A stretch of 64,000 nt of DNA from Geosiphon pyriformis uo1 (lineage: Eukaryota > Fungi > Glomeromycota), in contig JAAOMT010000648.1 in NCBI GenBank assembly GCA_016748015.1, forward strand, positions 62,001-126,000, given 5' to 3'. Positions 31,280-60,600 of this stretch are shown here, piece by piece. The translations under genes were made by a program, and so were the position numbers. How positions within the stretch are numbered: position 1 is the first letter of the stretch; every line of letters begins with the position of its first letter. Under the pieces are notes generated by a model. It made no database searches. It saw only the letters and a list, made by a program, of their open reading frames with translations, and had not been told where the DNA came from.

Positions 31280-33534
31280 GCAGTTTGGTTTGGAAAGTTG
31301 CTATGTGCAACGTTAGAGGCATGAACAATCCTGCTAAGCAAGAGGATGTTATTAGGTGGTATAAGGAAATGAACAATTTGGTCTCTATCATTACTGAAAT
31401 GAAATTAAGAAGTAAGATTCATCTGTAGATTGTAGATAGATTTGATGGTGTCTGAGTGTTCACTTCTGGTTCAGACTCTGGTCACTTGGGTGTGGGTGTT
31501 GTTGTTATCATGAATGTTTTTTTGGCTTATTATGTGTGCAAGATTTCTGAGGTGCCTGGTTGGCTTCTGTCTGTTAAATTACTTTTCAAGAATAAACTTT
31601 CTGTGTCGATTCTGGGGCTTTATGCTGGTGCTTTTCTGGCAGTTCGGTTCTCTCAAGCTGGTGAGATTAACTTTCTCATTGCAAAGACTGTCAATGAATC
31701 TTCTTTCATTGTTCTTGGTGGTGATTTCAATGAAGATGGTTTTCGTAAATGTGCAAGTTTTAGGAAGTGCCTTGATTTGGGTCTGGCAAATTCTTTGGTA
31801 GGAAGCCCGGCTGTGAAATTGCCTACTTGGGCAAACTCTAGGGGTGTTAAGAAAATGATTGACTATGTGTTAGTTTCTTCAAATTTGGTTAATGTAATAG
31901 TACACCACAGTGTCTCAGATGTTGATGAACATTTCGAAACAGACCATTAGGCTGTTTCCATGTCTTTGGGTTTAGGTGGTTTATTGGATGTGCAATTGAA
32001 CTCTCTTCGCAAACAGGTAAATAGAGATCGTTGGAAGTTTAATTTTAAGAGTGCTGATGATGCGAAATAGAACAAGTTCAAGGGTGCTACGGCAGCTAAT
32101 GCCACCATGTTCTCTGATGATTTTATTGCCTCTCAGCAATTCTCAAATTTGAATGTGATGTGGGACATTGTTCGCAAGATAATGGTTCTTTCAGCTGATG
32201 AGGTGTTCAAGAAAAAATGGTTTAAGGACTATGATGGTGTTTTCACTAAGGAATCATCCAAATTTCTTAAGTTAGAACTTTTGATATCAAAGCTGGTTAA
32301 AGCTTCTCAGTCAATTTGTCATGACAAATTCATTTCACTGTTGGAAGTCTGGGGTTTTCTTGATAATGATAACGCTTTTGTGGTCAGGTCTCTCTTTCTC
32401 TCTGGCTCTCCTCTTGATACTGTTTGGTCAGCTCTTTTCAAGATCAGAAAAACTTATCACTCACTTAAAATGGCAGAATCGAAGCATGTAGAGGAATCTC
32501 AAATCAAATCAGCAATCTATAAGAGGATGGAAAGTTTCAAGCTGAACAAAGGTCACACTATTCGGAGCATTCTGAAATGCTCTTTTTATAAGGTTGTCTT
32601 GGATCACTTAGTTGTGAATGATAAGCTGGTTATAAAACCTGGTCATGTGAGATTAAGAATGGATGAAATCATGGAAGGATGGACTAGGAAGCGTAGGGTG
32701 GTTTCCGATGTCCCTGATGTGTGGCACTGTCAATATCAGCCATTGGATTATGTTTTTGATGAGGCTTTTTCTGGTGTAATACAGCCAATTGAGTTTTTGG
32801 AATTGATTGGCGTGGTTTCTGATTTGCCTGTTGGCAAGACTGCTGGTCTTTTGGGTATTTCAAATGAGCTGTGGATGCATAATGATAGGTCTGTTCTGGA
32901 TATGCTCTTGGTGCTTCTGAATTCTTGTCTGTCTTATGAATCTGTGCCTGGTCCTTGGAGGGAAGCTTGGATTTCGATGATCTCTAAATCATATGAATAG
33001 GAAGGTGTTCTCATAAATACCAGACCTATAGCCTTGATTGAGACAGCTCACAAGATCCTCTCCAAGATTCTTTCTGACAGGATATCGCTGGTGTGCAGTG
33101 CTCATAATGTTCTTCGTGGAGATAATTTTTCAGTTTTGAAGGGTACGACTACCCAAACTCCTATTTTTGCTATTGGTTTGGTTGTTAAGGATGCTTTGGA
33201 GAAGAACTGGGAGCTCTGGCTGGTGCTGCAGAATATGCAAAAAGCGTATGACTCTGTTGGATGTGAGCATCTTGAAAAGTGTTTAGTCAGGATCAAAATG
33301 TGTAGCAAGTTTATTCATTTTTTCGGTAATATTCATAGAAATTGGACCAATTGGGTTATGACAGATTTTGGTTTAACTGATGGTTATAATGTACATGATG
33401 GGTTGGACTAAGGAGAAGTTTTTTCTCCTCTTCTTTGGTGCATATTTTATGATCCTCTTTTGTGTGAGGTCAAGTGTCAAGAGAATGTGTATGTGTATAA
33501 ACTCAATTCTCATTTTGTTTCTAGGAATGATCAC

Positions 33535-34400
33535 TGTTACAGTTTAAGAATTTAGCAAAAAGAATCATAAAAATAATACAAACTATTCAATCATAATATA
33601 GCACAGTAATAATCTTAGAAAGGTAATGATTAACATAGTAGCAAACACCATCTCGCGATAGTGACAAGCACCAGTTCACAATAGCAGCCAACACCAACTG
33701 GTGATAGCAGCAAGCACCAGGTTGAAATATCAAAAAGAAAGTATTTTCTCGTAGAACTACAAACATGTATATATACAGTAGTTTTAATATTGGGAAAGGA
33801 AAAATCAAGTAATAAAAATCATAACTTATCAAGCAATAAATCCAATTTTATCCAACAAACTCCACTTTAAATCATACTTTCAAATTAAATATCCCAAGAA
33901 ACCTTTAAAATCAAAAAAAAATGAAAAAAAATATTTAAAACTGAACTATCACAACCCAAAGTATTAAGAAACTTACTTGTATTATTTATTGAATGAAACT
34001 ATCATTCATCAACTGAAACCCTTGGAAGAATAATCCTTGATCAAGATTATTCACGTTGTTACTAATTGATAAAAGCTTTATTGTGAGAATTAAAAAAGCG
34101 CTAAAGACCATTAATATTCTGTGTTTCTAGATTAGAGAAACACATCAGGCAATTGCAAAGATAGCCTCAGAGAAGACCCCAGACAGTGGGTAGATTTCAG
34201 TTCAGCCTCTGAGAAGGAGTACATAAACACACACAACAATCAAGAATTAAAGAATAACTTACATTGCAACAGTAAAAAGAAAGCCTTCAGTGTAATAGTA
34301 ACATTATCACACAAATAGAATTGAGGAACTCACGAAAGACTGATTGCAATTAAAGCGGGATATTAGCAATTAAATATAACAAGAAAACCATCCCGTAATA
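33535..34400 (+). repeat. Element A 5' LTR (866 bp), TGTTAC...GTAATA
   Basis: Direct repeat of 40589-41400. Confidence 0.97.
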
Positions 34401-34402
34401 TT

Positions 34403-34418
34403 TGGTAAACCCTACGAG
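34403..34418 (+). promoter_or_regulatory. Primer-binding site of A (TGGTAAACCCTACGAG); cognate tRNA not identified
   Basis: TGG lies 2 nt after the LTR; aligns with the PBS of B (TGGTGCTCCCTATAAG). Confidence 0.75.
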
Positions 34419-34482
34419 AAAAAAAAATCAAAAAGGAAATAATAATTAGCAATAATTCATTGCTAAAAAGGAAAAGACAAAA

Positions 34483-37400
34483 GTGGCAACAAAAACCCCT
34501 AATCTTACTGTTCTTGAATTCTGCCATGCTATTTACACACAAAATCAAAGTGATCTTGGATTACCAGAAGGGTGTTGTCCAGCAGAATCTGCCCTCACTT
34601 ATTATATCAATGCCAGAATAAATTATCATATAGGAAAGGAAGAAGAACCACACGACGCAAAACTTGGATTGTATAGAGAATTATCACAATACACTACAAA
34701 AAAAGTAGCAGTAATAGCCGCAACTATTGTCAAAATCCATCGAGAAATTGAGCAATACGCCAACGAAAATTTTCCAATATCCACAGGAAACATTAGGGAA
34801 CGTGCCAACAAAACCAAAGAAAATTTAGAAACTAATCAGGAAAGTAACCAGCAAAAACTAGAAACACCAGCTCAAATGCCAAAGAAAACTGTCACTCAAT
34901 CAATAAAGAAACAACGTATTTATTCACCAGAAGATAAATCATACCATTTTTCACCAGAAAATAAGATACAAATTCCATTAGGAGCTGCATCATCATCAAC
35001 ATCAACTCCACAAATGCCAAGAACTCCTAGTTATATTGATAAAATTAAACAACGTAACTGGGGAGACATACCAATTACAGGAGGATATTTATCACTATTC
35101 CAAAACCCTCTTTTTCAGCCAAAATTTAGAACGGGGTTTGAAAACCGTGAAGAGAAGTCTGAATCAGAATCCAAAAAAGAGACCAGCGAAAAAACAATCA
35201 CAAGACCAGTCACTGGAACAAGCAACCAGTCCAGAAACCAAGAAACTCGTGATCAAGAGGAAGAACCGGATATAAGGGAAGCCACCTTTAGGAATGCTCA
35301 AGGAAATATCATCCCACCTTCTCTTAGACCAATAAACCCACCAGCAGAAAACGGCAACGAAATGACCACACCATACATTGCAAGACTAACAGATTTCTCA
35401 GGAGAGGAAGAAGAAACGGACGTGCACACATGGCTCAGAGAAGCACAAAAAGCCATCCAGGCAAATAACTGGAATGACCAAAGAGCAATTCAAACATTAC
35501 CTTTCTTCCTGAAAGACACAGCCAACTCGTGGTATTAAAGCCTGGAAACAAAACCCACGAGCTTCGCCGAATTTAAAAATACACTCCTGGAGTATTTTAG
35601 CGACCCAAATGCCGTAATCCAACTACAGAACGAATTCAATACTATCAAGCAAAATACTGGTGAAACTGTCACCCAATACCTTGCTCAATTCAATCGAATT
35701 CGCCGTCAGATTGAAGCGATTGAACAAGGATACTACACTGATCCTCAGGTTTTAAATCAGTTTATTAGAGGATTAAAAAGCAGCATTTTAGGAAGAGTAC
35801 GCCCTGCCCACCTTAATTCCTTACCAGAAGCCGTTACGCTTGCCAGAGCCCTTGAATCGGCTGAGAAAGAAGCTAACCATAGTCAAATAGTTAACATGGT
35901 AATGGAAGAAAATAAGACAGAAACATTAGAGAAAAGAGTAACGCGATTAGGGGAGGAACTCTCTAAGAAAATAGAAAGTTACCTCATCCTGGATCTGAGA
36001 AAAAATACATACCAACCACCCCAAAGATGCAGCCAGGAAGTCAGCGACAGTCGAAATAATCGCTCGTTACGCCAGGAATTCAGAACAGAAACACATGCCT
36101 GCCATTTTTGCAAACGCGTAGGACATTTGATTAGTCAATGTCGAACGCAAATGATGCAGGAAGCATGTGAAAATAATTACTACACGCCACCCCAAATGCC
36201 CAGAAACCAGTACACGCCAATACCACACCAATATCCCACCACGTATCAAAATCAAGGAACTTACCAGCAACAGCCCATGATAGCCAACCTGAATTGGCGT
36301 CCCGAGGCCCGAAATCAGCCCATGTAGAACCAGAATGCGTTGGTCCAGAGGAATCCAAACCATGCCGGAACCAATCAGCAAACCAATCCAAACTACCAAA
36401 ATTATCAACAAACTTACCTTAATATACCGGAAAACCTGATCATCGGAAACAATGACGGTAGAAACATAAACAGAACCAAGAATTCCTCCAAATTGAGCCA
36501 GACAATATCACCAGCAGTTGCCACCGAAGATAGCAGCCTCGCAGCTATTTTTCCTTTTGAATTAGAGGAAAACGAGGCTATGTTCAGTGGAGCAGCATTG
36601 GACGAAAAACGCCTAATCACTGCTATGTATACGGAAGCCACTGTAAACAATACCCCAATCAAACTTATCTTAGACAGCAGATCCGCTGGAAGCATCGTAA
36701 CGCTTCAACTAGTAAACCAACTGGGTTTCAAAGTTGATCGTGCCGCGATGTCCCAAATCATAACAGCCGATGGAAGTACAAAGCTGCTTTATGGCGAAAT
36801 CGACTTATTCCCTTTCGAAATTAACGGCATAGTAATACCTACAAAAGTATTAGTAATGGACGCTACACAATATCAAGCGTTAGTAGGAAATGACTGGCTA
36901 ACAAAAGCCAACGCCACCCTAGACTGGACCACCCAAGAGCTTCTGATCAATTATAATGGCCACCAGGCCAAAATTCCAGCCACCTGTGGCCACTTCCAAA
37001 AACCCAGCGCCAACCAAAGACTTACTTTCGAATTTGAGAAAAATCCAGTACTACCAGCCATCGAAACCTATCAGCTCTCTTGGGCTGATGACCAAAGAAC
37101 AGGACTACCAGCCATACCAACGTGGACCAGCGAAGAAAGATCCGAATGGAACCAGGTAAGTTCATGAAGAAACCACCAGCAACGCAGACCAAAGCTAGAA
37201 TGCTCGGTTTGCAAGAAGAAACTCTCGTCTATGACTGCGTGCAGTGCACCGGACGAAGACCCAAGAAACCCCACCCACTACTATTGTAACCGTTGTAACA
37301 AAGAAAAATACGGTTACCCAGAAAGACACAGAAAATGGGACGAGGAACCGTGCCTCGCTTGTGGAGAACCGTTATCAAGAGGGTGTGACTGGAACGACTT

Positions 37401-40191
37401 ACCAGGCAGAGGAGGAACATGTGACGCAACTTGCCAATACACGATCCTCATCTGTGACTGGGTAAGAAGAGGAATGCCGTTCGAAGCAGCATTCAACAGA
37501 GCATTAAAAAGACTACAGCACTACCCACACGACGAGGACGAGTTGTACAACATCGCACAAGCCAAAGTAAGAGGAGGAACCGCCGAAGAAATACGATGTT
37601 GGAAAGAGTCAGCCGAAGTAGCCGACGAAGTCGCCAGCTACAACATGTTCGACCCAGTGGATGAATTCCAGGACTACTACCAACAACTATGCCCCACTTG
37701 ACAAGAACAAGAACAATACCTCGCCCAAATCAACACTTACTTCTGCGAAAACTGTCTCATCCCGTGCCAAAGTCAGTGCTGTGAAGAGTGTCAAGACAAA
37801 AGGGACTTAGAAAGAAAAATGGAAATTGAGAATCAGCAGTCTTAAAATCAATCAATAAATCAACAAGACTCACTTGACGGTCCCGAGTCAGAAAAATTTG
37901 TAGCCTATACCGACCTAGAACAGGTGACCGACATCCAATACTTCGACAACGGGCACTTAGGAATAATACCCAAAAGAGCCTATCCAACCAACGCTGAATT
38001 CGATCTACGTTATCCAGAAGACCAATCCACAACGTTACCACCCAAGAGCATCACCAAAATCGACCTAAAAATAGTGGTTGAAATTCCGCCAGGAATAATG
38101 GTTCAAATGGCGTTGCAATCAAGCCTCGCGAAAAAAGGAATAAGCGTTCAAGGAGGAGTAATTGACTCCGGATACACTGGAAATTTGATGGTTTTGCTAC
38201 AGAACAATTCAGAAAAGCCTTATACCATTGAATTTAAAGAAAAGATTGCACAAGCAATTTTCCTACCATTGGTAAAAATTGGGAAATTCGTGCCAGTGGA
38301 AAATCGTGAGAAATTGTCACAAACAACAAGAGGAACTTTTGGTTTCGGATCGACAGGAAAAGGAATTGAAGCAAATTTTACTGAAACAATAGAGAAAAAA
38401 AGCGAAGTAATTAAAAATGAGCGGTCCATTATGCTTCTACCATATGGAAAATCAGAAATAAGAATAAAAAGGACAATTAAAGAAAAAAACCTAATATTTG
38501 AGCCCTACTCAGAAACCTGCCAACAGTTTCTTATAGGACTTACTAACCTTTTTATTCCAGCTGATAAAGCTCAATGGATAAAAATTCTTATCGCAAACAC
38601 CACAGAAGAACCCGTTTACATTCCGGAAGATACCATCATGGGATACCTTGGAACGGAGCTAGAAAATGTGTCAACACCACAAGAAATTCTAAATTTCCCA
38701 GAAATTGCCCTCTACTGTAAACTTACTTCAATAAATTGGCAACAACCGGTAGAATGCTATCAATTTACGCCAGAAAAATTGGCCAAATTAAACATTGGAA
38801 CAATGGATCCTGACCAACAGCGACAATTAAAAGCATTAATTTTAAAATACTCTGATATATTTTCAAGAAATGGCGAATTTGGAAGAACCAACTTGGTTCA
38901 ACACCAAATCCCCACTGGAGACGCCAGACCTGAAAAACAACGCGCTTACCGTGTCTCACCAATGGAGCATAATTTTATCAGAGAAGAAGTCCAAAGCATG
39001 TTGGAAAAAGGAATAATACAACCATCAATAAGCCCATAGTCCTCACCAGTTGTTTTAGTAAGGAAAAAGAACGGAAAAATTAGATTTTGCGTCGACTATC
39101 GCAAACTAAACAGCAAAACAACCAAAGACTCATACCCAATACCGTTAATTGACGAAATCTTCGACGTTTTTGGAGGAGCAAAATGGTTTTCTACACTGGA
39201 CTTGACCAGTGAGTACTGGCAAGTAGAAATGGACCCAAAGGACAGGCATAAAACAGCATTCACAACACAAAATGGCAATTATGAATTCAATATAATGCCA
39301 TTTGGATTAACAAACACTCTTGTGACATTCCAAAGACTAATGGACGTAATTTACTCCGGAATCCTGTGGCAATCCATTGTTGTCTACTTGGATGATACAA
39401 ATGTTTTCTCGTCAAAATTCACGGATCATCTCCAACATTTACAACAAGTTTTTGAGAGATTGAGACACGCTGGACTTAAACTAAATCTAGAAAAATGTTT
39501 CTTTGGGAAAAATGAGCTAGCATTTTTAGGACACGTAGTTGGAAAAGATGGAGTAAAACCAGATCCATCAAAAATAGACAAAGTGAAAAATTTTCCAGTA
39601 CCTCGAAACGTTTCAGAAGTTAGAAGCTTTTTAGGACTCGCATCTTACTACCGCCGCTTTGTAGAAAACTTTTCAAACATTGCCAAACCCCTTAATTACC
39701 TACTATCTAAAAATGTGAAGTTTGAATGGACTGAAGCACAACAAAAAGCTTTTGAGTACCTTAGACAAAAGCTCATTGAATCACCAATAATGATCTATTC
39801 AAATTTCAACAAGAAATTCATTTTGGCCACAGATGCCTCTGGAACTGGACTTGGAGCCATTCTGTCACAAAAAAATGATAATGGAAAAGAACGTGTAATT
39901 GCTTATGCCAGCAGAAGTCTCAGTACGGCAGAACAAAACTACGTAGCACATGAACTTGAATGCTTAGCAGTAGTCTGGAGTTGTGTTCACTTTGACACAT
40001 ATTTACGGTACCAACCCTTTGAGATTATGACAGATTATAGAGGTCTGGTCTGGTTAAATAACAAGAAAATGCTAAAAGGAAAATACGCCAGATGGTCACA
40101 AACGTTAGCACCATACGATTATATTATCAAATACAAAGAAGATACCAAAAATGCTAATGCCGACTGTTTGTCAAGAATGAGACACACATAA
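34483..40191 (+). pseudogene. Element A gag-pol in a single frame: capsid, CCHC, aspartic protease, Cys-rich domain, dUTPase, RT, RNase H; point-mutation stops only
   Basis: ORF pieces starting at 34483, 35896, 36340, 37231, 37924 and 39202 share one frame; CHFCKRVGHLISQC; LILDSRS; MPFGL, YLDD; TDAS, HELE, NANADCLSR. Confidence 0.95.
37950..38360 (+). other. dUTPase domain within element A pol
   Basis: Trimeric dUTPase motifs: AEFDL, (R)SSLA, GVIDSGYTG, KIAQAI, RGTFGFGSTG. Confidence 0.92.
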
Positions 40192-40220
40192 AAATCACCA
40201 ACCCACCCGCCACAACAACA

Positions 40221-40547
40221 ATGAACAACCACCTTTACAAAAACCTCAGCCAATACTTAGAAACACTACAAATAGATGAAGAAATGCCAGTAAAAGAGCT
40301 AATTAAGCTCCAAAAATTAGCAAAACACTATTTCATCCAAAATCACATACTTTATTACCGGAATCGACAAAATCCAGATAATCCATTAAGAGTTATAACC
40401 ACGGATGAAAAAGAAACTATCTTATTTAACATGCACTCAGATATTCATTCAGGCCACTTTGGAAAAACAGCAACCATCCAACGTGCAATTAGCTATTACT
40501 ATTGGCCAAAAATGAGCTCAGACATAATCCAATACATAAGAAATTAA
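40221..40547 (+). pseudogene. Element A integrase N-terminus, own ATG, truncated before CxxC and DDE
   Basis: MHSDIHSGHFG...YYWPKMSSDIIQYI, then runs directly into the pre-PPT motif. Confidence 0.9.
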
Positions 40548-40573
40548 CTTCGATTTCGACGGAGCTCAATCTT

Positions 40574-40588
40574 GAAAGGAGGGGATAA
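40574..40588 (+). promoter_or_regulatory. Polypurine tract of A (GAAAGGAGGGGATAA)
   Basis: Purine run immediately 5' of the 3' LTR. Confidence 0.9.
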
Positions 40589-41400
40589 TGTTACAGTTTA
40601 AGAATTTAGCAAAAAGAATCATAAAAATAATACAAACTATTCAATCATAATATAACACAGTAATAATCTTAGAAAGGTAATGATTAACATAATAGCAAAC
40701 ACCATCTCGTGATAGTGGCAAGCACCAGTTCACAATAGCAGCCAACACCAACTGGTGATAGCAGCAAGCACCAGGTTGAAATATCAAAAAGAAAGTATTT
40801 TCTCGTAGAACTACAAACATGTATATATACAGTAGTTTTAATATTGGGAAAGGAAAAATCAAGTAATAAAAATCATAACTTATCAAGCAATAGATCCAAT
40901 TTTATCCAACAAACTCCACTTTAAATCATACTTTCAAATTAAATATCCCAAGAAACCTTTAAAAATCAAAAAGAAATATTTAAAACTGAACTATCACAAC
41001 CCAAAGTATTAAGAAACTTACTTGTATTATTTATTGAATGAAACTATCATTCATCAACTGAAACCCTTGGAAGAANNNNNNNNNNNNNNNNNNNNAAGCG
41101 CTAAAGACCATTAATATTCTGTGTTTCTAGATTAGAGAAACACATCAGGCAATTGCAAGGATAGCCTCAGAGAAGACCCCAAACAGTGGGTAGATTTCAG
41201 TTCAGCCTCTGAGAAGGAGTACATAAACACACACAACAATCAAGAATTAAAGAATAACTTACATCGCAACAGTAAAAAGAAAGCCTTCAGTGTAACAGTG
41301 ACATTATCACACAAATAGAATTAAGGAACTCACAAAAGACTGATTGCAATTAAAGTGGGATATCAGCAATTAAATATAACAAGAAAACCATCCCGTAATA
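40589..41400 (+). repeat. Element A 3' LTR (contains an assembly gap)
   Basis: Direct repeat of 33535-34400. Confidence 0.97.
41076..41095. other. Assembly gap (20 N); about 65 bp missing by comparison with 34031-34095
   Basis: N run; both flanks match the 5' LTR. Confidence 0.95.
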
Positions 41401-44195
41401 TCGCACTGAATTTTGGACTGGGTTTTCTACTTTTTTTGCTGCTGGGGTCTTTGTCGATGACATGATTTGGATTGGCAGCAGTCAGACTGCTACTCAACAT
41501 ATTCTTAATATTGCTAGTGAATTTTTTTGAATTAATGACATTTCAATCAACAATGACAAAACTGTGGCCATTCCTATTAATAGCAGGATCAGCAATCTGT
41601 CTCTTTTTATCAGTGGTTTACCCATTTCCATAGCCAAAAAAGGCAAATCTCATCAGTATCTTGGCATCTTTCTTTCATCTGATGGTCTTTCTAAGCCTAG
41701 TTTGGCTAAGGTGCATTCAAATGTTCATTTTTTCAGCAATTTGGTTTTAAAGAAAGCAGTTTCAGATAAGCAGTTCTTGTACCTGGTGTTGGCAGTTCTC
41801 TATCTTATAGTCAGCTACAGGATGCAGTTCAGCTTTATCCCTGTTAGTGTGTGCAACAAGTGAGATGCTCTAATTCGCAAGGGTTTGAAACTTAAATCTG
41901 GTCTTCCTCTTGATTTTCCTAGTAACACAATTCATCATTCTTCTTTTTATGGTTTGAAGTCTTTCTTACAATGTCAGTTTGAAAGCAAGGTTGCTTCACA
42001 TATTAGTTTTGCAAACTCCTGCAGGATTCTGGGTCAATTGTTTAGTCACAGATTTTATGACTTGCAAGTTCTGTGTTGGCACCCCATTCATCCATTAAGT
42101 TCACCAGCTCGTATCCGTGTTAGTGTTTCCAATAATTTTTTGTCAGGAATGGTACGCATTCTTCTTGGGTGCAATTTGTCTTTAGGTGGCTCTTTGGCTA
42201 GCTCTTTTCGGTTTCGTGATGGGGTGCCCATATCTACTGTTCTGGGCAAATCCTTGTTTTTCAAGTACTTGCCTTCTCTCTGGCATTATGGCATTGCCTT
42301 TGTGGATCAGCTTTGGGATCATCATGGAGATATCTTTGATTGGTACACCTTTAAGCGGTGGAAGAAACTGGATCCTCGTGGCCCAGTTCCTGAGTGGTTC
42401 AGGCACTCTGTTGTATTTCTTAATGGTGCACCTCTCTCTCTTTTGGCTTTGGGTGGTGTTGGCCCTGTGGACATTCATGGTTCTGATGATTTTGTGTCTG
42501 TATGTGATCATCTTTCTCGGGTTAGTGCTGATAGTTTGTCTGTATATACAGATGGGTTGGTGAAAAATTTGGGCATGGCTGGTTGTAGGACTGGGGCTGC
42601 TGCCTTTTTTGAAGACATTAACTTGGGTTTGGGTGTCTGTGTTCAGGATTTGATGTTGTCTACTTTGGCGGAGTTGCAGGCTGTAGCGTTGGCTCTGAAG
42701 TGTGTGCCTGTAGATTGTTCTGTTTGCCTGTTTTCAGATAGCCAGGCAGCTTTGGATGCTTGCAAGTTGGAGGTGAACTTGATGTATTCTGACTTTCGAA
42801 ATCGGTGTTGGGTTGAGTGCCAACATATTAGGAATATTATCCACAAGAAAAATTTGAGGGTTAACTGGCACAAGGTTAAGGGCCACTCTGGTGTGTTGGA
42901 AAATGATTGTGCTGATAGCATTGCTGATGCTGCAGCTCTTTCTGTTTGGCTTCTTTCTTCTCATGTGGATGAACATTTTTTGTTGGCAGATGGTGGTATT
43001 GTTTCTGGTAATTCTAGACACTTTGTTCAAGATGTTTTTCGTGCTGTCTGTTGGGCATGCTGGGAGATTGGTTCTGGTTCTGGGTTTCTAGCTAGTAATT
43101 TGCACTTGGATGTCGATTGGCTTATCTCTTCCAGAGTTTGGCATCTTGATTTGCATATGGCAACTGGTTTCACCAGCAAGCACACTGCTGATATTTGTAC
43201 TTACCTCATAAAGACTTTGCATCATCGGCTTCCCGTGGCTGTTCGAAAGCGTATTTATGATAAATGTTACCCTAGTGTTTTGTGTCTGTATTGTGGTGAG
43301 GTGGAAGTGTCTGATCACATGTTTTCTTGTATAATTGATGATGCGGCTCATCGTCAGGTTTTGGAATTCTGTATGTCTTCTTGAATGGTGCTTTCTGGTC
43401 TCTCCCTCCCTTCTTCAAGCATTTTACAGCTGCTGTCGACCTGTGCTTCAGATTTTCTGGTGTTCTCGGCTCTTTGCAAGGGTTTTGTTTTCAAAGAATG
43501 GCTTCAGAAGGCTGTTTCCATCTTCCGTAATCCCAAAATTGCTGGCATTAAAATTGCTGATTTTGTACACTTTATTTGTATCACTTTCAGGGATGACATT
43601 TGGTTGGTCTGTGCTAAGCATCGTGCATACATGGAAAAGAATGGCCTGATCCTGGTGGATGGCTTGGTTCCTGCCTCACTTTCTGGTTTGGTGTCAAGAT
43701 TCTTGAATGGCGTGGTTAGGCTGCTTGGTGTTACTGAAGCTTTTGGCATCCATTTTGGCTTTCACAAATCTTGCTCTTTTTTTTCAGGTATTGGTAACCC
43801 AGTTTCAGTTAATATAATTGTGTAGTGTTGTTCTGACTGGCTCGAGTGGCTGGTCACGTGTGAAAAATGCATGATTCACGCCTAGTTTAGATCATTTCTT
43901 TGATGTATAGTTTTAGGTAGTGTTTGGATCTTGCTCGTTAAATAATAATAATAAAAAAAAATATTTTAATATTAAGTTTAAATATATGTTAAACAAAATT
44001 GTTTTTTTTATTTTATTATTATTTTTAATAAATTGTTTAATTTTTATTGGTTTTTTTAATATAATGTATTTTGGCAAATAAAATAATATTTAAATTAATA
44101 ATAAAATTAAAAAAAACTTCTTTTTTTCCTTTATCCAAAATTCTCAAAAGGGAGTCAAAAAGTTTTTTCTAAAAAAAGTCTTTTTACAATTCAGT

Positions 44196-47505: not shown

Positions 47506-47519
47506 TTATTTCCTCTTTT

Positions 47520-48155: not shown

Positions 48156-48219
48156 TTTTTTTCCTTGGTTGTCTTTGTTGTGTATACTGTGTTTTTATAT
48201 ACTCTTTCATTGTTTGATT

Positions 48220-49595: not shown

Positions 49596-49628
49596 CTTTT
49601 ATTATATTTTTTTTGGGTTGAAATGTTT

Positions 49629-52600
49629 TTAGATTTGTCTCATTTGCGACAATCCATTAGCATTTCTATTGTCTTTTTCTTTTTTATAATGTACTGTATA
49701 ATTGAATGGTGAAAGTTCTATTTTCCATCTGGCATGGCAATTGTCTGCAAATTCTTGTTTCTGAATTGAAGTCAATTCTTTGTGATCCATATATACTTCA
49801 AAATTTTGGCTTAAGTATTCTCTCCATTTGATAACAGCTTAATAGATTGCTAAATGTTTCAGTGCTGAAGTTCTATAGTTTATTTCAGCTGGACTTAAAC
49901 TTCTACTGGTGTAAACTATTGGATGCTCTCTTCTGTCAGGTCTTTTCTGTGATAGTACTGCTCCCAATGCTTGACCTAATACATCAGTAGTAATGATAAA
50001 TGGTTTGTTGTGATCTGAATACATTAATATTGGAGCTTGGATAAGCTTTTTTCTCAATGTGTCGAATGTTTCTTGTTGAGTTTTAGTCCATTTATACTTA
50101 GCATTTTTGGTTTGTAGATGGTGAAATGGCTGAGCTAGTTTAAAAAAGTTCTTGATGAAGCAGCAATAGTAGCCTGCGAATTCCAAAAATGCCTTTAGTT
50201 CTGGCAAATTGGCTGGTACTGAAAAGTTCTTAACTACTTCGATCTTGTTTGAATCTGTTTTAATTTTGTCTTTGCTCACTACATGTCCCAAAAACTTGAG
50301 TTCAGTTTTTCCAAAGAAACATTTGGTTGCATTTAGTTTCAATCCAGCTCTTCTTAATCTTTCGAATACTTGTTAGAGATAATGCAAATAATCATCAAAT
50401 GTTTTTGAGAACACATTGGTATTATTCAAGTATACAACTACCAATTTCCATAGTAATCCAGTATAGACAATTTTCATGAACTGTTGAAATGTTGCTGAAG
50501 CATTCATCAAGCCAAATAACATGACTTCAAACTCAAAATTTTTTTTTCTTGTGATGAATGCTGTTTTTTCTTTGTCAGCTGGATCCATGGCTACTTGCCA
50601 GTAACTACTATCTAAGTCCAGTGTTGAGAACCATTTATTTTCTCCAAAAGCGTCAAATAGTTCTTGGATCTTTGGAGTTAGATAGCTATCACTTTTTGTT
50701 ACTTCATTCAGTTTCCAGTAGTCTACACAAAAATGGATTTTTCTATTTTTCTTACAGACTAGTACTATTGGTGACAACCATAGATTTATTGATGGCTGAA
50801 TTAGCCTATTGTCAAACATCCAGTTGATTTCTTGACAAATGATCTCATGGCTAGCTGGTGATACTTTGTATGCTCTTTGTTTAATTGGCATTGCATTTCC
50901 AGTCTTGATCTGATGCTGGGTGATGTTGGTTCAGCCAAATTCATTTTTGCTAGCAAAAATGTCATTGAAATTGTTGAGTAATATCTTGAGTTGCATTCAT
51001 TGAAATAGATCTAGATTCCTCATGTTCATCTGTTCCAATTGTTCTGGTTGGAGCAGATAACATTCACTTTGTCTGTAGATGGTTTGTAATGTAATATCCA
51101 CATATCTGCAAAGCTATAGAAAATCTGAAATGTGATTTGGTGGTTGATCCTCAACTTTAGTGGTTAAATATCCAATAATAGTTCTCTTTAGTATTTCAAT
51201 AACACTTCCAGTTGTGTTGTAGATAAGAATTTTGATGTTTTTGAGGCTTTTGGCTGATATGTAGAGATTAGTGAATCCAATCTCTTCTGATTCGCAAATA
51301 GTGACTTTTGTTTCAAACAACTAAGCCTGATTCTTTACTTCTCTTTTTATAGGTAACATATACTGGTCATATGGTGGAATGGAAATTAATTAATGGATTG
51401 AAATAATTTCTTCTTTGTTAATAACTTTTTTCTCTGCCATATTAACTGATATGTCTATTCTACCTGTTAATTCGAATCCCTATATCCCTTTAGCAGTAAT
51501 TCTTAATTCTTCTCTGTTTCCCACTGACACTAATTGAGCTATTTTCACCAGAGGTAGGAATATTGTTTGTGCTATCTTTTTATTTGGCTCTATGATATAG
51601 ATCTTTTTAGAGTTATTTTGTAGCATAGCAATGATATTTCCTACATACCCTGTATTAATTATTTCTCCTCTGATGTTGATTCTTTTTTTTGCTAGACTAT
51701 TCCTAAATGCTAATTGAACCATGGTTGTTGCTGGGATTTCCAAAGCTATTTTGAGATCAATACATGTGCGCAAATTTGGTTCCAATTTGATGGCTTTTTT
51801 TCCCAGATATCTCAGATTAAACTCTGTGTCAGTATCATGTGTGCATTCTGGCATGATACCTTCATTATTATCACTATACCATTTGAGTTCCTGCTCCTTA
51901 GATAGATCAGGAAGCACAATATATATTTTGGGGTTTGAATCAGAGTTTGAATCACTGATATTTTCATTGCTATTTTGAACAAAGCTGGAATCATTATTTT
52001 TATCATCGTTATTGTCAGAGTTTGAATTAGAATTGAAAATTGATTCTGATTCTGATGCACAATTGCTGATTGGTTCTTTTTTCTCTGGAATCATGTAGAT
52101 TATGTATGGTGGTGGATTGTAAATAAAGTCACACTCATTACAATATTGAAAGTCACATGGAATTAAACAGTGGTCACATAGTCGAGTGTTGATTTCTTCC
52201 AAGCATTGCTCCTGCTCTTCTTTTGTAGGTGCTAGCTCTTGATAATGTTTGTGAAATTGTTTTGGATTTAGGAGATTTATGACTGGTTTTGGGTCCCAGT
52301 TGAGTTCTATAGGTTTAGGTGGGTTATTTTTAATTGTTTTTATCTTTTCTAGTGTTGCTCCTTTGATTGGTGAGTGCCATTTGCCAGATTTTGTCATTGT
52401 TGTGTAAACATCCATCTAGACATTTGATGGCTCATCTCCAAGCAGTGTCTATGGGCATTCTTTTCCTTACCCAGTCACTTATATTAACATAATTTATCAC
52501 ACATTTTTCTTCGCCCAGGAATGTTATTCCACATTTCTTTATTTAGAAGAGTTTCTCTACAAGCCAAGCATGATTCATTGTCCCATTTCCCAATCCATTT

Positions 52601-55600
52601 TGGTCTTTCAAAGCATTTAATGATGCATAGATGGCAGTAAAATTTTGTTGCTAAAATGTATTCCTCATCATTGCCACAACAAGCACCCATTAATGACAAT
52701 TTTTTGCTGCAATCGATGCATACCAGTTTTGGGTGGCAATAAGTGAATTAGTGGAGTGTAGTATAAGAATTATAAGTGGAGTTGCTGTCGGTTATTGGTT
52801 CTTCTTCTTTCCCCTTTTCTTTTCCCTTTTTGTCTTCTTTCCATTCCTAATTTATTTGTTCTTCCTGGTCATTGTCAGTTTCTCAGGCTTGGTCAGCTTT
52901 CCAGATAAATTCTTTGCTCTGCTTTCTTTTACTGTTATTGTCCCATAAAGATATTAGCAGCAGTTTATTGTGTTTGGTATCAGCCCAAAAAACTTGGTAG
53001 GCTTCCCAGATAGGTTTTTTCTCCTCTTCCTCGAATTCAATAAGTGAAGTTTTCGAATTGGTGGTCTTGAAATGGCCACATGTGGCTGGTACACATGTAT
53101 ATTAGCCGTTCTGGCTAATTTGAAGCTTCTGCATATTTCAATCAAGCAATGCGTTGGTTTTGGATAGCCAATCATTCCCAACAAGTGCTTGGTATTGGGT
53201 GGTTTCCATGACCAGTACTTTGATTGAGACCATAATACCATTAACTTTGATAGGGAAGTTATTGATTTCACCAATAGGAGTTTTTGTTGCTCTATTAGCA
53301 GTTATAATTCTGGTGCTGGCAGTACAATCAACTTAGTAACTTAATTGGTCCATGAGTTGTTTTGTAATGATGTTGTCAGCTGATCCACTGTCTAGAATCA
53401 GTTTGATGGAGTGGCTATCAACTTTGGCATTAATATACATGGTCATAATAAGTTTTTCTTCTAGAGCGGTGTTACCGGAGGTTTTTGGTCTCTTTTCTGT
53501 AATGTTGTTGATACTTATTTGCTGTGAATTCACGTTTTCTGAATGTGGTTGAACCTCCAGTAACTGAATTTATCTTCAAATTATCTCCTATAATTTGAAC
53601 TTGCTGGGCTTATGAGTGGAATGGCCAATTCCATGCCAGTTGCTTTTTGTAGTTACGTTGTAGTAAACGTCAACTCTTTCCCAGGTATTGCTCGTCTGGA
53701 AGCTTACTAAAAATGTGTAGTTACTTTGCTGTGAAAGTCAACTCTTCTACAGGAATCTCGTCTGTAGGCTACCTTAATGATTGTAATAAGAAAAGAAAGA
53801 AAAATAAAAGAAATGTAAAAGAAATAGAATTTTGTCGAGGGAAACGTTTTCTATCCAGACCTGGAGTCACTAACAGTTTACTGAAATTGGTAGCTAATCA
53901 ATTTCGAAATGTTAGTTGGGTTTTGGGGATTTTCTAAGTACAATAATTAAAGAATTTGGTTTCTCGAATTATTTGATATTTATTTCTTTTTTTTGTGTGT
54001 ATAGGAACGGTTTTAAGAGATAAATCTAAAGTAAGATACATTTTCTCGAAGAGAGAAGCTCTTCTTTTATACAACTTGTTATAACACTATTCTATGAACT
54101 TGAACTTTGCTATTTTCTACAATTTCACTGAACTAAAGATACATTTTGGCGAACTACAAGTTATTTCAGCAAACTATTAGATATTTCGGTGAACTATCAA
54201 TTATTTCTACAAATTTCTACAAATTTCGGTGAACTTCTGAATGTTACATAGTTCGGGGTGTTGTATGATTGGTCATCGCAATTAGGTTACATTTGTGTTG
54301 TGTACAATTTGGGTTATTAATTAAATGATAATTTCAGACATTTTTTGCTAATGTAATAAGTGATAATTTGAAATGATAATATATGCTAATTAATGATAGG
54401 AATTATAAGATAGTTTCATGCTAAATAATATCTCTAATTTCATCTGGTAACAGCAGTTCCACTAAATAATGGCATGGTCGACAATTCTTCGAGTTTAAAT
54501 GGGAAGATGGTGTTCAGTAATTTGTTCTCGGTAATAATAGCTGGCAGAATGTTGTTGGTAAATGTTGGTTGTTGGTTGGTCTTCAGATTATTGGGTTGGG
54601 TGTCTTTTGTGGTAACCAAGAGACTTAAATAGTTTTGGGAATTTGGGTTTTGGACATATCTGGTGCCTGAATTCCATTGTCAAGATTCTGCTGGTCATGT
54701 GGAAGAACTGGGAATCAGTTGGTGAACTACTATCAACAATCTCTAACTTTGTTGAATTAATCTTGGTCTTTGGGTTTCATTTTGAGGTAAGTTCTGTGAC
54801 AGTGTTTGAATTTGTTGGGACTGATAGATTACCTGAGGCTGTGGCTAATAAATAGGTTGTGACTGCGGCTGATAAATTGTTGGTGTCATCAGTTGATAAA
54901 TTGGCACTTGATATACTGGTGAATGATAAAGTGACTGCTGTGTCATAGATATGTAATTCTAATAATATGGCTCTGAGTTTAGTAGGTTATTCGAAATTTG
55001 AAACTGGCAATCGGGATTTCAATATTGATTTTCTGATCATTAGTTATTTAAGTGATGGCAGCAATCAATTTGTAGGTGTTCTTGTTTACCACAATAGTGG
55101 CAAACATGCATTTTTTGTTGCCACTGTTGATTGGTCGACGATAATAGACATGACTAATTCTGAAAACAATTTGTGTTTTCAGAATTATTGTGTTGTTGTG
55201 GTGGTTAATAAATTGTGCGATTGTCAGCTAAGTATCTCTTTAATTTCTGATTGATGGAATCACTAAATTGTTTCAATTTGGAATTCAATTCAGATGGTCC
55301 ATTTATTACTAGGTTAATAGCTTGGGCATGGTTAGCTTCGAGTTTAGCAGCTTCAAAATCTTGGGCATTTGTGATGGCTGCTTGCAAATCAATAGGATGC
55401 AATGGACGTACATGTTATAAGATGCTACTGTGTAATCCATGAATAAACTGATTTAGGATCTGGACTACTGTGAAATAATTGGTGTCGATGGTTTGGATCT
55501 GGTGCAAATTCTTGTGGAAGCATCCTAAGTAAGTAGTAACTGCTTCATTTTTTCTTTGTTTAATGGTAGTAAATGTGTTTGCTAGTCTATTAATGCTGTT

Positions 55601-56716
55601 ATTATTGCTGAAGTATCTTAAGAACTCAATTTTGAATGCATTAAAATTTTGGGGTTTGTTGACCAGACTTTGGTACCATAAATCAGCAGTATCCTGGAAA
55701 AAATATGGGATGGCTTGCATGGCTCTGGCATTATTTCATCTATTAGTTGCAATGGCTTTCTCTACATTATTTAGCCATACTTGGGCATCGTCCTTTTTGC
55801 CAGTGAATTTTTTGAGTTTGGCTATTGGTGCATATGCCATTGGATCTAAGTTGGGATGTGATTGCTGTTGAATTTGTTGTTGAGGTAGCAGTTATGGCTG
55901 TTGTTGCTATTAGGCATTTGGTAAAACTGGAGATAAGTGCTAATTAATTACATCGGGGTTTTGATTATTCTGATTTTCCAGAGTTTGATTAACCGGAGTT
56001 TTAATTTCTGAATGTTCTAAGATCAAGTTTTGCTTATTAACTTTCCAATCACTACTTTTTTTTTCCTCAGAGTCAGTTATTTCCCAAGAACTAACAGCTC
56101 CAAAATCTGGTTGTGGTGGTGATAATTGAATTTCTGATGGCATTGGAGATTGTAATTTAAATCTCTCGAAATAATCACCATATGTTCTTAATAACTCTGT
56201 CTTCTTTTGTTTACTTTGGAATGGGATTCTGTTTAGTGGCGTTGTCGCACTTGTTGTAGCTGTGTTTATTATATTGATAGTGCTTCTGGGTGTGTGGTAA
56301 TATGATAGATTAACAGGTGAATCAAACCTTTGTTTCTTCCAAGTGGGTAGTTGGATTTGCTTTGGTGTTCCTGCTGGTGTTTGTAGTCTTCCTTTGTCTT
56401 TGTCTGCAAAAGTAATAAGAAATCTCTGTTTGGTGTATTTTTCAATTTTCCTGTTTATTTCTGTAATTAGAAGTGCAAATAGGTAATTTTGTGGAAGGGT
56501 GGTGCTTTGGAGTAATTCACTGAAGAAGTTGTTGAAGGTGAATTCTGGATTTCTTTGGTCTCTTAAGTGATATACTATTCTTTCATTAACATAGCAATTG
56601 AAAGCTAATTCAGTTGGCCAACTATTATTTGTTAATTCAAGATGAGTGTGATAGTATTGAAATAAAGATTTTGCAAATCCTAAATAGTTTGTTCCTATTT
56701 CTTCAGATTCTGCCAC
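49629..56716 (-). pseudogene. Element B gag-pol (capsid, CCHC, PR, Cys-rich, dUTPase, RT, RNase H), decayed and split by a solo LTR
   Basis: CHYCGKQEHLQIDC; LILDSGS; GEIINTGYVG and KIAQTI (dUTPase); MLFGL, YLNN; ends NANGLSQMRQI*. Confidence 0.92.
53470..54452. mobile_element. Solo LTR of family D (983 bp) inserted just upstream of the B protease
   Basis: Termini TGTTACCGGA...TCTGGTAACA; TSD GCGG (53466-53469) / GCAG (54453-54456); removal restores FSGTALEEK (FSGAALDEK in A). Confidence 0.9.
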
Positions 56717-56760
56717 TGTTTGGATGATTATGGTTGGTGCTGTTCTCTATAGGATTATAT

Positions 56761-56776
56761 CTTATAGGGAGCACCA
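56761..56776 (-). promoter_or_regulatory. Primer-binding site of B (TGGTGCTCCCTATAAG)
   Basis: TGG lies 2 nt inside the 5' LTR boundary. Confidence 0.8.
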
Positions 56777-56778
56777 AA

Positions 56779-57659
56779 TGTTACAGATGATTATTTGGGG
56801 TCTCAAATCAAATAACAAATCCATAACTTGGTGCTCAATATCTTGACAATACTAGTAATACTGGTACATTGGTTGTATTTGAAGGTTTTAGAGTTGAGTT
56901 TTTTGTATAATAAACAAAAATTCAATGATGATGTAGTTGGTTGGTGAGTTGTATTCCCAATTTATGTCTTCAGCTTGGTGGCCAGTTTATTCTGACAGTC
57001 ATGCCCTTCTGATAAGCTATCTATTAATATATATATAATTTTACCCTTATTTCTGGGTCTTTTACCAGGCTATCCATGACATCAATTACTCAGCACTTTA
57101 ATCTTTAATCAGTTAGTATACTACAGTAAAAATCAAAGAAAGAAAAAAATAAAAAAAAATAAAAAAATGAGCCAAGGTGTGCATGTTAGTATTTCATCAA
57201 TAGCCATAATCAAGAGCTATTGTTCTAGCATGGTTAAGTATTAATTACTATCAACATAAAGTGTTGATAGTGGGGAGTAGATTTGGATAGTGAATGATTT
57301 ATTTATTTTAATATTTGTGGATAGAAGATTTCTTACTAAAAATTTTTTTTTTCTACTTCTAATATTACTACTATATATACATAATTGATGTTCTACAAGA
57401 TTGTTCACATTCCCAAGCAATGTGCTATAATTTCTTGAGCAATGCTCATATTGCTGAGTGATGTGCCCTAATTTTCTAACATTGCTCCACATTGCTGAGC
57501 AATGTGCTGTGTTTTCTGACATTGCTCCATATTGTTGAGCAATGTGTCATGATTTCTATCATTGCTCTACATTGTTGAGCAATGTGCTTACGTGCTACAT
57601 ACTATTCACTTATTGGTCTACTATTCTCTCTATATCTGTTTTTTTTTTTATGAGTAACA
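56779..57659 (-). repeat. Element B 5' LTR, TGTTAC...GTAACA
   Basis: Direct repeat of 46622-47505; canonical termini. Confidence 0.96.
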
Positions 57660-60600
57660 ACAGAGTGCTGAGAAGATTATTGATTACATTTTTGTGAGCA
57701 AGAGTTTGTTATTTGCAGTAGCCAGTCATAAAATTGTTTCTGTTTCTGATTTTTTTAACACCGATTATAATGCTGTTTTGGTTTCAGTTGGTCTGGAGGG
57801 TCTCTTAGATGCCCAGTTCAATGATGTTCATATGCAGACTAATAAGGATAAGTGGAAGTTCAAGATCAAGAATATAAATACTGATAAGTGGTCATGCTTT
57901 AGAGAATGTTTGTTAATCAAGTTCTTAGAAAATATAGATGTGTTCAATAATACAAAGAATAATAGAAATTTGGATGCTATGTAAAAAATTCTTAAGGAGG
58001 TGGTTATAAGCTCAGCTAATAATGTGTTTTTTAGACACTAGTTTAGTGAGTTTAATTGTTCAAAAAATAAGCAGTTTTCAAAGTTCTTTAAGTTAAAATT
58101 GTTGATGGCCAAGTTGGTAAAGTGTTTGAGCTCAGATCAGGAATCAAAAACTGTTTATCTCTTTAATATGTGGTCTACTATTGATAGTAAGGGGGTCTTC
58201 AAAGCATACACAATGTTTGATAATAGTAAAAGCAGAGAGAGCATTTTACAGCACTTGTTGGGAGTCAAAAAATTGTACCAAAAGTCCAAATATTATGAGT
58301 CTAAGATTACCAGAGACATTTCAATCAAAAAAGCAATAGACAAACATATGGAGAACTTTAGCTCCAACAAAGAACATATGATCAAAAGTGTTTTGAAAAG
58401 GCCATTTAGGAAGATGGTGCTAAACCATTTAATAGTGAATAATGAATTAATTTTGGAATCTAAGGAAGTAAAATCTGCTGTTGATGTTATCATAGAAAAA
58501 TAGACAAGAAAACAAATTGCTCTCAATTTTTTGCCTGTTCATTGGTCTAATCAGTATGCCCCTTTAAACTATGTTTGTGATAATGCATTTTCAGATATCA
58601 TGAAAGTGATTGAATTGGATGAGTTTCTCTTAGTGGTCAAAAAACTGTCTAATAAAAAAACTGCTGGCATTTCTGGTATTCCTAATGAGCTTTGGAAGCA
58701 TGGAGATACTTAGGTTCTGGGTGGTTTGTTGGATATTCTCAATGCATGTTTAAAATTGGGTGCAGTTTTTTTACAGTGAAAGCAAGCCTAAATTTCCATG
58801 ATACCAAAGCTGTATGATTGAGAAGATATACTTACCAATACCAGACCTATAACTTTAATTAAGACAACCAGGAAGATACTGTCTAAGGTTTTTTCTGACA
58901 GGATATCTCTGGCTTGCAGTGAGTTTAATGTCTTTTGTGGAGATAATTTCTTAGTTTTAAAAAGCATGTCTACTCAAACTCCAATTTTTACTATTGGCTC
59001 TATTGTTAAGAATGCACTTAAAAAGAACAGGAAGTTATAATTAGTACTTTAGAATATGCGAAAGGCTTACGACTTAGTTAGATGGTCCTATTTGTGGAAC
59101 AGTTTAACTAGGATCAAGATGTGCCCTCATTTTATTAAGTTTTTTAGAAGCATACACAATAATCAGACCAACCAAGTAATGATAGACTTTGGACTCACTA
59201 ATGAATATATGATTTATGATAGGTTGGATCAAGAGGAAGTTTTTTTACTATTGTTGTGGAGAATCTTTTATGATTCTCTGCTTTGTGAAATTAAAAGGCA
59301 TGAGCAATTATGTGGTTATAGATTGAATTTGAAGTTTTTCACAAAGTCCAGTAGAGCTAACCCTAAGGGTGGCAAAACTTTTTTTTTTGTGGCTGGTGCC
59401 TTTGTGGATGACACTATTTGGGTTGAAAATTGTCTGGTGGCCACACAATACATTTTGGATATTGCGAGTGAATTTTTTTTGATTAATAACATTGCTATTA
59501 ACACTGACAAAACAATTATCATTCCTATTAATCAAGAGGCCAGAAAAGTTTCACTGTTCATTAGTGGCTCTAAAATCTCCATTGTCAAAAAGGATAAATT
59601 CTACCAATACTTAAGAATTTTTTTTTTTATAAATGGCCTGTTAAAGCCAAGTTTGGCCAAAGCTCATTCAGATATCAAGTTTTTTTCAAATGTGGTTTTA
59701 AGAAAAGCCATCACTGAAAAGCAGTTTTTATATTTGGTTTTTGCTGTTCTGCAGCCCATTATTGATTATAGACTACAGTTCAGTTGTGTTTTCAAGAGTA
59801 TATGTAAGAAGTAAGACAAAATATTGAGAAAAAAATTAAAGCTCAAGGCCAATCTATCCAAGAATTTTTTGAATAAGGCTTTGTATCATCTGGAGCTATA
59901 TAGTTTGAGAACTTTTGAACAAGTACTGACTGAAAATCTATTGGCTGGCTTAGTTGTGTTCACTAATGCTGGTGGAATTCTCAGTGAATTATTTGAGCAC
60001 AGAGCCATGGAGTTGCAGGCCACTAGCTGGATGCCTTGGCACCCTCTTCAAGTTCTGATTAAGTTGCTGATTAATTTTATGAATTGTTTTTTGGCTGGTG
60101 TAACACATGCTCTCAAATTGTGCAACCTATTATTGAGTGGTGATCTGTCTGATGTTTTTCAGGTCAGGAATGATATTGCAGTCTTGGATGTACTTGGTTT
60201 TGAGTCTTATTTGGACATGGTGAAATCTCTTAAAAAATATGACATTGTGTTTGCAAACCAGCTTTTAAACAGACATGGCACATGTTTTATGTGAAACACT
60301 TTTCATAAGTAAAAAAAGCTGGACCCTAAAGACCTAGTTTCTGTCTGGTTTGTTTCTTTGATCAAATTTGTCAATAAAGGTGAATTGTTGAATGGTGTGC
60401 TATTGTCTCTTTGTTCAGTTTTTACTGATTTTCTTTGTAACTTTGGTTACATTAATAAGCATCTACTGAGTTCTGGATTGGGTTTTGTAACCATTTACAC
60501 AGATGGTTCTATTAAAAATTTTGGTTTGTTAAATGCTTGTGATAGTGCTGCCACTTATTTTCTAAATGTAAATACTAGTGTTGGAATTAAGGTAGATGGG

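Follow-up and report, generated by a model that had tools for sequence, protein, structure and literature searches.

Ty3/Gypsy retrotransposons nested in an old LINE array of Geosiphon pyriformis carry 4 bp target-site duplications with a probable integrase bias for CG-centred sites

The stretch of Geosiphon pyriformis uo1 DNA analysed here (contig JAAOMT010000648.1, positions 62,001 to 126,000; 64,000 nucleotides, hereafter the window, with positions counted from its first letter) is AT-rich (33% G+C) and strongly depleted in CpG, with an observed/expected ratio (o/e) of 0.26 over its whole length and of about 1.25 for TG and CA. Old copies of a long interspersed nuclear element (LINE), with a mutual identity of 65-70%, form an array across the window, and long terminal repeat (LTR) retrotransposons, here named A, B, D and E, are found within it. 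Taken as a whole, the evidence is likely to reflect Ty3/Gypsy elements of a Glomeromycotina clade that inserted into the old LINE array and into one another. The insertions of A, B and D are flanked by target-site duplications (TSDs) of exactly 4 bp, one copy of which has a central CG and the other a central CA, and the integrase of these elements probably prefers NYRN targets (YR, pyrimidine-purine), with a 4 bp stagger and a strong CG bias intrinsic to the integrase-target DNA complex. The hosts, LTRs and duplications on which this reading is built are the following.

28994..33534, resuming at 41405-43961, plus strand: LINE copy hosting A, of the APE, reverse transcriptase (RT) and RNase H type (paralog alignment)
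44084..46621, resuming from 57664 to ~61975, plus strand: LINE copy hosting B (paralog alignment)
33531..33534, no strand: left TSD of A, TCAC, decayed copy (four alignment columns overlap with the right copy)
41401..41404, no strand: right TSD of A, TCGC, ancestral copy (conserved Arg codon CGC of the host LINE)
33535..34400, plus strand: 5' LTR of A, 866 bp, termini TGTTACAG...CCGTAATA (LTR alignment)
40589..41400, plus strand: 3' LTR of A, holding an assembly gap at 41076-41095 (collinear with the 5' LTR)
46618..46621, no strand: left TSD of B, ACGG, ancestral copy (conserved Arg codon CGG, LINE endonuclease region)
57660..57663, no strand: right TSD of B, ACAG, decayed copy (paralog alignment)
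46622..47505, minus strand: 3' LTR of B, adjoining a minus-strand polypurine tract (PPT) at 47506-47521
56779..57659, minus strand: 5' LTR of B (LTR alignment)
~56761-56778, minus strand: primer-binding site (PBS) of B, TT + TGGTGCTCCC, adjoining the 5' LTR
53466..53469, no strand: left TSD of D, GCGG (frame test)
54453..54456, no strand: right TSD of D, GCAG (frame test)
53470..54452, no strand: solo LTR D, 983 bp, TGTTACCGGAGG...CATCTGGTAACA, within the protease open reading frame (ORF) of B (LTR alignment, frame test)

The LINE domains recognized in the window are weak APE matches and a single RNase H match, RVT_1 being found in genomic paralogs. The LINE ORF at 41885-43384 is 99% identical to the Geosiphon pyriformis protein G9A89_006714 and has more than 100 paralogs, all from G. 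pyriformis.

The length of the duplications was read from the interrupted sequences themselves. Each flank of A and of B was aligned separately to four LINE paralogs, which are ungapped through both sites, and exactly four columns are covered by both flanks; for D, the protease ORF of A aligns seamlessly to that of B only when 4 nucleotides are counted once, as counting 3 or 5 breaks the frame. The TSDs of A, B and D are exactly 4 bp long, as the first-pass annotation of the window had stated. A 5 bp reading of A (ATCAC/ATCGC, with an LTR ending in ...GTAAT) was rejected, as both the PBS spacing and the alignment of paralogs point to 4 bp; the spacing of LTR...TAATA, TT and TGG in A matches that of B and of L002, a metagenome relative.

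Boundaries might nevertheless have been misassigned, or the gap in the 3' LTR of A might join the ends of two different copies. Such an artefact would fit the recurrence of N gaps inside family-A LTRs, in the window as well as at the G. pyriformis loci L100 and L101, and the flanks of L002, which do not match. It is highly improbable in view of the four overlapping columns in ungapped paralogs at the sites of A and B, the restoration of the protease frame of B only by a 4-nucleotide duplication at D, and the PBS and PPT positions, which fix the inner ends of the LTRs. The gap itself (20 Ns, 41076-41095) lies outside coding sequence and stands for ~65 bp (34031-34095 of the 5' LTR). Since 33535-34030 aligns to 40589-41075 and 34096-34400 to 41096-41400, collinearly and in the same orientation, and since the host LINE picks up in exact register beyond the element, the scaffold join is sound and does not bring together two different copies. 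Besides that in the window, gaps are found at L100 10892-11008 and at L101 10240-10641 and 15513-15750; their lengths are arbitrary. Three of the four fall at LTR positions ~470-690, and that at L101 10240-10641 begins at ~330. They reflect a recurring difficulty in assembling this repeated LTR.

The presence of a central CG in one copy and CA in the other was confirmed at all three sites, and for A and B the ancestral state can be read from the host. The CG of both LINE hosts lies within a conserved Arg codon, which is CGC in the host of A (AGG, AGG, TGC and AGA in the paralogs) and CGG in the host of B (AGA, AGG, AGG and AGG), so that CG is the ancestral state and CA the derived one. Each element would have lost the CpG of one of its TSD copies after insertion, through a C-to-T or G-to-A transition. 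The chance of a central CG in three out of three sites is 3e-7 at the present CpG frequency, and 6e-5 to 1e-4 at a frequency of 4-5%.

A bias towards such transitions is visible in the LTR pairs, which differ by 15 transitions and no transversions in A (~97% identity) and by 77 and three, respectively, in B (90.8% identity). Four of the eight CpG sites of the A pair have changed, and 27% of its C/G positions in CpG context, versus 2-6% outside it; in the B pair, which is older, 19-28% of positions have changed in all C contexts, and a single CpG site is left, in one LTR copy. Judged from these sequences, the genome appears to undergo both CpG hypermutability and a general C-to-T process resembling repeat-induced point mutation (RIP), either of which would leave one TSD copy with CG and the other with CA. 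To our knowledge, RIP has not been established for Glomeromycotina. Blocks of 11-26% G+C in the region 14000-22000 also look RIP-like.

Further LTR sequences lie in the window, and their flanks had been read in the first-pass annotation as compatible with decayed NCGN targets, which amounts to special pleading.

16848..17804, minus strand: second D LTR copy (D2), with heavy C-to-T and G-to-A decay, flanks ATGC and GTAC
62579..63043, no strand: B-like LTR fragment (B'), cut by element E, left half-site TTAG
63044..63775, minus strand: 3' LTR of element E, half-site ACAT at 63040-63043

The flanks of D2 lie in decayed DNA of 11-16% G+C and are uninformative for the target; the simplest ancestor is GTGC, and GCGC needs extra changes. 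The site homologous to the half-site of E (63040-63043) reads ACAT in both LTRs of B, so that E probably used a CA and not a CG, and the half-site TTAG (62575-62578) is uninformative. No LTR pair exists at 209/7754, where an ATAT/ATAT duplication had been listed, the similarity there not rising above shuffled controls; an E-like LTR remnant spans ~7093-7838. Element E, whose LTR is followed by a minus-strand PPT and a GAGCTCC motif, extends beyond the end of the window.

An independent sample of seven complete TSD pairs was obtained from G. pyriformis, Rhizophagus irregularis, Rhizophagus clarus and a metagenome relative, all of them beyond the window; they are listed here with one half-site and one locus lacking a clean duplication.

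L101, G. pyriformis: family A, TSD GCGG/GTGG
L100, G. pyriformis: family A, TSD TCAC/TTAC
L101, G. pyriformis: full-length D-family element, TSD ATGT/ATAT
L100, G. pyriformis: D-like 5' LTR, ACAT, half-site only
L001, R. irregularis: TSD CCGG/CCGG
L004, R. irregularis: TSD ACGG/ACGT
L003, R. clarus: TSD GTAT/GTAT, LTRs 99.6% identical
L095, metagenome relative: TSD ATAT/GTAC
L002, metagenome relative: flanks ACGG / ATGC, no clean TSD

The two R. irregularis copies belong to one family (pol identity 88%) with LTR termini TGTAACCC...GTGACA. The full-length D-family element of L101 (4979-20830, LTRs 93% identical) has a family-A element nested within it and is itself embedded in the gag portion of an element resembling B, a three-level nesting such as that found in the window.

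Every one of the ten complete pairs, those of the window included, is 4 bp long with a central YR step, and among the independent pairs alone the centre is YR in seven of seven (P = 3e-5) and CG in three of seven (P = 1e-5 to 2e-3, depending on the CpG frequency assumed). Overall, six of the ten centres are CG, with P = 7e-7 when unconditioned and P = 2e-4 when the comparison is confined to YR steps and CpG is taken as undepleted. Relative to the number of sites on offer, insertions in G. pyriformis have CG at the centre ~5 to 20 times more often than CA/TG, and this small sample contains no TA or non-YR centre. The target of the D-family element in L101 is homologous to ACGT in element B of the window and to ACAT in L100, so that a CG target is here seen decaying to TG or CA. 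The paralogs of the family-A target in L100 read CCAT and CAAA, which marks a true CA site, and the paralog of the D-like half-site in L100 also reads ACAT. The CpG targeting put forward in the first-pass annotation was therefore replicated as a bias at loci beyond the window, and does not hold as an exclusive rule, CA/TG and TA centres also being used.

Generic DNA flexibility could account for part of this pattern if any bendable central YR step sufficed, as in prototype foamy virus (PFV) and murine leukaemia virus (MLV), and if the CG excess were noise compounded by post hoc selection. The ten YR centres and the occurrence of CA/TG and TA among them would be expected, and such a preference is established for integrases that make 4 bp TSDs, the retroviruses of this kind showing it most strongly (PMC4422553). 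In PFV and MLV flexible YR steps are favoured and RY disfavoured at the centre, YR being used in ~36% of cases against 22% expected (Serrao et al., 2015, PMC4422553), which is well short of the ten out of ten found here. Moreover, CG represents 3% of YR steps at present and 11% if undepleted, whereas it was seen in six of ten pairs (P = 1e-7 to 2e-4) and in three of the seven independent ones, and the related copies L001 and L004 both lie at NCGG-type sites. Flexibility alone is accordingly an unlikely explanation. Under the preferred reading, the integrase would cut the target with a 4 bp stagger, for which the central step must be a bendable YR; this requirement would be sharpened to CG in the families at hand (TSDs NCGN, often NCGG), while sister families in Rhizophagus clarus and the metagenome would prefer (G)TA(Y) instead. 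We infer that the sequence would be read by the integrase itself.

Several points weigh against a CG bias intrinsic to the integrase. The preference is leaky, as family A used TCAC in L100, and element E and the D-like element of L100 used ACAT; the sample is small, at ten complete pairs and a handful of half-sites; the three cases from the window were selected post hoc; the flanks of L002 (ACGG/ATGC) do not form a clean TSD, and the pair of L095 requires two transitions. Families A, B and D yielded no intact integrase from which a residue-level basis for the specificity could be read. Tethering by a host factor, or some property of chromatin correlated with CpG, may also underlie the preference.

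The search for further relatives delimits the group in which the 4 bp rule applies. No usable LTR pair was found at L005, L093, L094 or L096-L099, and a scan of IMG/VR with an RT-RNase H alignment returned only distant relatives (34-47% identity). A metagenome scan yielded 80 loci, with close relatives on short contigs; the sole complete pairs, L027 and L088, are distant (40-47% RT-RNase H identity) and were left out of the counts. The former (886-7187) has a 3 bp overlap, AAT, and the latter (4432-9646) a 5 bp TSD, GTAAC, which indicates that the 4 bp rule is specific to the closer clade. The metagenome contig L094 joins four bacterial MacB/FtsX permease genes (1-9000) to a dUTPase-RT-integrase Gypsy fragment (9400-13600) and is probably a chimeric assembly.

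The first-pass annotation went further in supposing that methylated CpG might be what is recognized. In such a scenario the integrase, the product of ORF3 (a frame downstream of the integrase, described below) or a host reader of 5-methylcytosine (5mC) would steer the elements into silenced repeats in place of a chromodomain, discriminating methylated CpG, and the targets would then be eroded by 5mC deamination. The elements do nest in repeats, the CpGs hit by insertion subsequently decayed in the manner of methylated ones and, as had been supposed, the integrases of the clade contain no recognizable chromodomain; transposable elements (TEs) of arbuscular mycorrhizal (AM) fungi, furthermore, carry dense CG methylation, which makes methylated targets plausible (PMC8647823). 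On the other hand, neither Pfam nor fold searches revealed a 5mC-reading domain (MBD, SRA or chromo-like) in the integrase or ORF3 of the clade, and CG targeting exists without any reading of methylation, both in recombinant ZAM integrase in vitro and in the CCGG/ACGG TSDs of Ginger1. The supply of targets also runs the opposite way. The rarity of CpG in the targeted LINEs was borne out (o/e 0.06-0.29), and young elements reach 0.72-0.75, so that a plain CG preference favours young or unmethylated DNA and not old silenced repeats; with 3-10 times fewer CpGs in the latter, the idea that CG targeting alone steers elements into them is not supported. Where DNA is dense in TEs and tolerates insertions, nesting would arise in any case. 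Methyl-CpG-directed integration is for these reasons regarded as quite improbable; if true, it would represent a chromodomain-free homing of a retrotransposon to silenced DNA.

The coding regions of A and B are arranged as follows.

34401..40588, plus strand: internal region of A (Pfam matches, tblastn)
34483-35538, plus strand: gag of A (Pfam; a CCHC knuckle is also present)
36340-37167, plus strand: protease of A (Pfam)
37924-38400, plus strand: dUTPase of A (Pfam)
39202-40191, plus strand: RT and RNase H of A (Pfam)
40221-40547, plus strand: integrase H2C2 zinc finger of A, followed by the PPT (Pfam)
47506..56778, minus strand: internal region of B (domain matches)
55415-56716, minus strand: gag of B (domain match)
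52943-54673, minus strand: protease of B, split by D (domain match)
51480-52415, minus strand: dUTPase of B (domain match)
50373-50891, minus strand: RT of B (domain match)
49839-50342, minus strand: RNase H of B (domain match)
48453-49595, minus strand: decayed integrase of B (domain match / integrase of relatives)
47580-48155, minus strand: ORF3 remnant of B (similarity)

The Pfam order in B and its relatives is Retrotrans_gag, RVP_2, RVT_1, RT_RNaseH(_2), Integrase_H2C2 and rve, A ending after the integrase zinc finger. Every structural criterion that was tested places the elements in Ty3/Gypsy. Their nearest named relatives are all from Glomeromycotina. No chromodomain was found in the intact integrases of L001, L095, L003 and L096 or in the integrase pieces of B, L004 and L101, and the integrases of the relatives end after an SH3/GPY module; the elements are not chromoviruses. 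Nor are they Ginger1 transposons, as they carry direct LTRs of 0.8-1 kb, gag, RT and RNase H.

The three LTR families distinguished in the first-pass annotation were upheld as far as the LTRs are concerned, those of A, B and D having no mutual cross-match, and the RT-RNase H regions of A and B are ~54% identical. They do not, however, stand for three independent integrases, given that A has no catalytic core and that A, B, D and E share the LTR termini TGTTAC...GTAACA (decayed by C-to-T in some, with GTAATA closing the LTR of A) and a PPT-proximal motif. All four also have a PBS of the type TT+TGG... and a purine tract ahead of the 3' LTR; in A the PBS, directly after the 5' LTR, is TT followed by TGGTAAACCC, and the PPT is AAAGGAGGGGATAA. 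The conserved motif, GGAGCTCA(A/G)TCTTGA, immediately precedes the PPT in families otherwise devoid of LTR similarity, at 40561-40588 and 63776-63805 (minus strand) in the window, at L002 13595-13622 and at L101 5950-5975 (minus strand).

The integrase core is absent from A, in which tblastn with the intact integrases of relatives matches residues 1-108 only, and no integrase match was obtained in the other two family-A copies fetched (L100 10379-16495; L101 9910-15961). With ~80 of its gag genes annotated in the G. pyriformis genome, family A would appear, from sequence, to be an abundant non-autonomous family. The missing core points to mobilization in trans, and element A was probably inserted by the integrase of a related autonomous family.

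ORF3 encodes ~230-290 residues after the integrase, and the protein library contains 71 or more members of its family. The sites at which it was located are the following.

L095, 12795-13589: ORF3
L002, 12953-13657: ORF3
Window, 47580-48155: ORF3 (the remnant in B)
L101, 5924-6310: ORF3

An AlphaFold2 (AF2) model of ORF3 (pLDDT 76) is mostly helical; ORF3 has no Pfam match, and a search of PDB folds with the model returned no significant match. No env-like ORF was recognized in these elements. Domains of nucleotide metabolism are present within pol. A dUTPase lies between protease and RT in both A and B, and additional domains are found between RNase H and integrase in two relatives, namely NUDIX and a deoxynucleoside kinase in the metagenome relative L096 (6969-8252) and a weak P-loop NTPase-like stretch in L001 of R. 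irregularis (9722-12046).

If the CG bias is real, it has practical consequences. New Gypsy copies in AM fungi are predicted to land in sequence that retains CpG, for instance young elements and the CGN codons of Arg, and LTR annotation with TSDs tuned to 5 bp will miscall these families. The AM-fungal TE literature searched contains no mention of TSDs or target preference, and a search for Gypsy elements with CCGG TSDs gave the Ginger paper as its sole relevant match. Sequence-specific Gypsy integration is in itself already known, and the fungal lineage is where no description was found.

Among fungal Ty3/Gypsy elements with a dUTPase, the order protease-dUTPase-RT has been described (Novikova et al., 2010, PMC2864245), and the arrangement in A and B is alike. 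The TSD given as an example, from SM-Tcn1 of a spikemoss, has a length of 5 bp (AACAC), and the Tcn1 clade has a chromodomain (PMC2864245), in contrast to the 4 bp TSDs and the integrases of the present clade. Compared with PFV and MLV, the 4 bp stagger and YR centre are shared, as is the avoidance of A at the last TSD position (none of ten here); the retroviral preference is weak and not CG-specific, whereas in the fungal elements CG is dominant among the invariably YR centres.

The Drosophila errantiviruses and their two-ORF derivatives (gypsy, ZAM, Tirant, Idefix) also make 4 bp TSDs. Their target subgroups are TATA, CGCG and ATAT, and sequence-specific integration has been called exclusive to them (PMC5408687); ZAM and Tirant target CGCG (PMC2527525, PMC5408687), recombinant ZAM integrase binding CGCGCg directly in vitro (PMC2527525), so that the parallel drawn in the first-pass annotation is supported by the literature. 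The likeness extends to short palindromic targets and to the coexistence of CG- and TA-type families, with some CA/TG, in one clade. Errantiviruses are insect elements, typically with env, whereas those described here are fungal, with a dUTPase between protease and RT and a shorter, leakier consensus (NCGN rather than CGCGCg). If confirmed, CG-centred and TA-centred families would extend sequence-specific targeting from insect errantiviruses to another kingdom, and would offer a natural set of close integrases with differing target centres, useful for mapping the determinants of specificity.

The parallel with Ginger1, likewise drawn there for the TSDs and verified in the literature, concerns both TSDs and termini. 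Ginger1 makes 4 bp TSDs, CCGG in 75% and CCGT/ACGG in 24% of cases, has TGTNR termini, and encodes a transposase closely related to Gypsy integrases (H2C2, DDE, GPY/F; Bao, Kapitonov and Jurka, 2010, PMC2836005). The fungal elements resemble it in their 4 bp TSDs (ACGG, GCGG twice, TCGC, CCGG and ACGG/ACGT) and in their TGTTA or TGTAA termini. Ginger1 is a cut-and-paste transposon from animals, with terminal inverted repeats and without RT or LTRs, whereas the present elements are fungal LTR retrotransposons whose specificity is less strict at the first and fourth TSD positions as well as at the centre. The CG preference proposed here would, if true, connect true Gypsy integrases with the CCGG/ACGG specificity of Ginger1 transposases.

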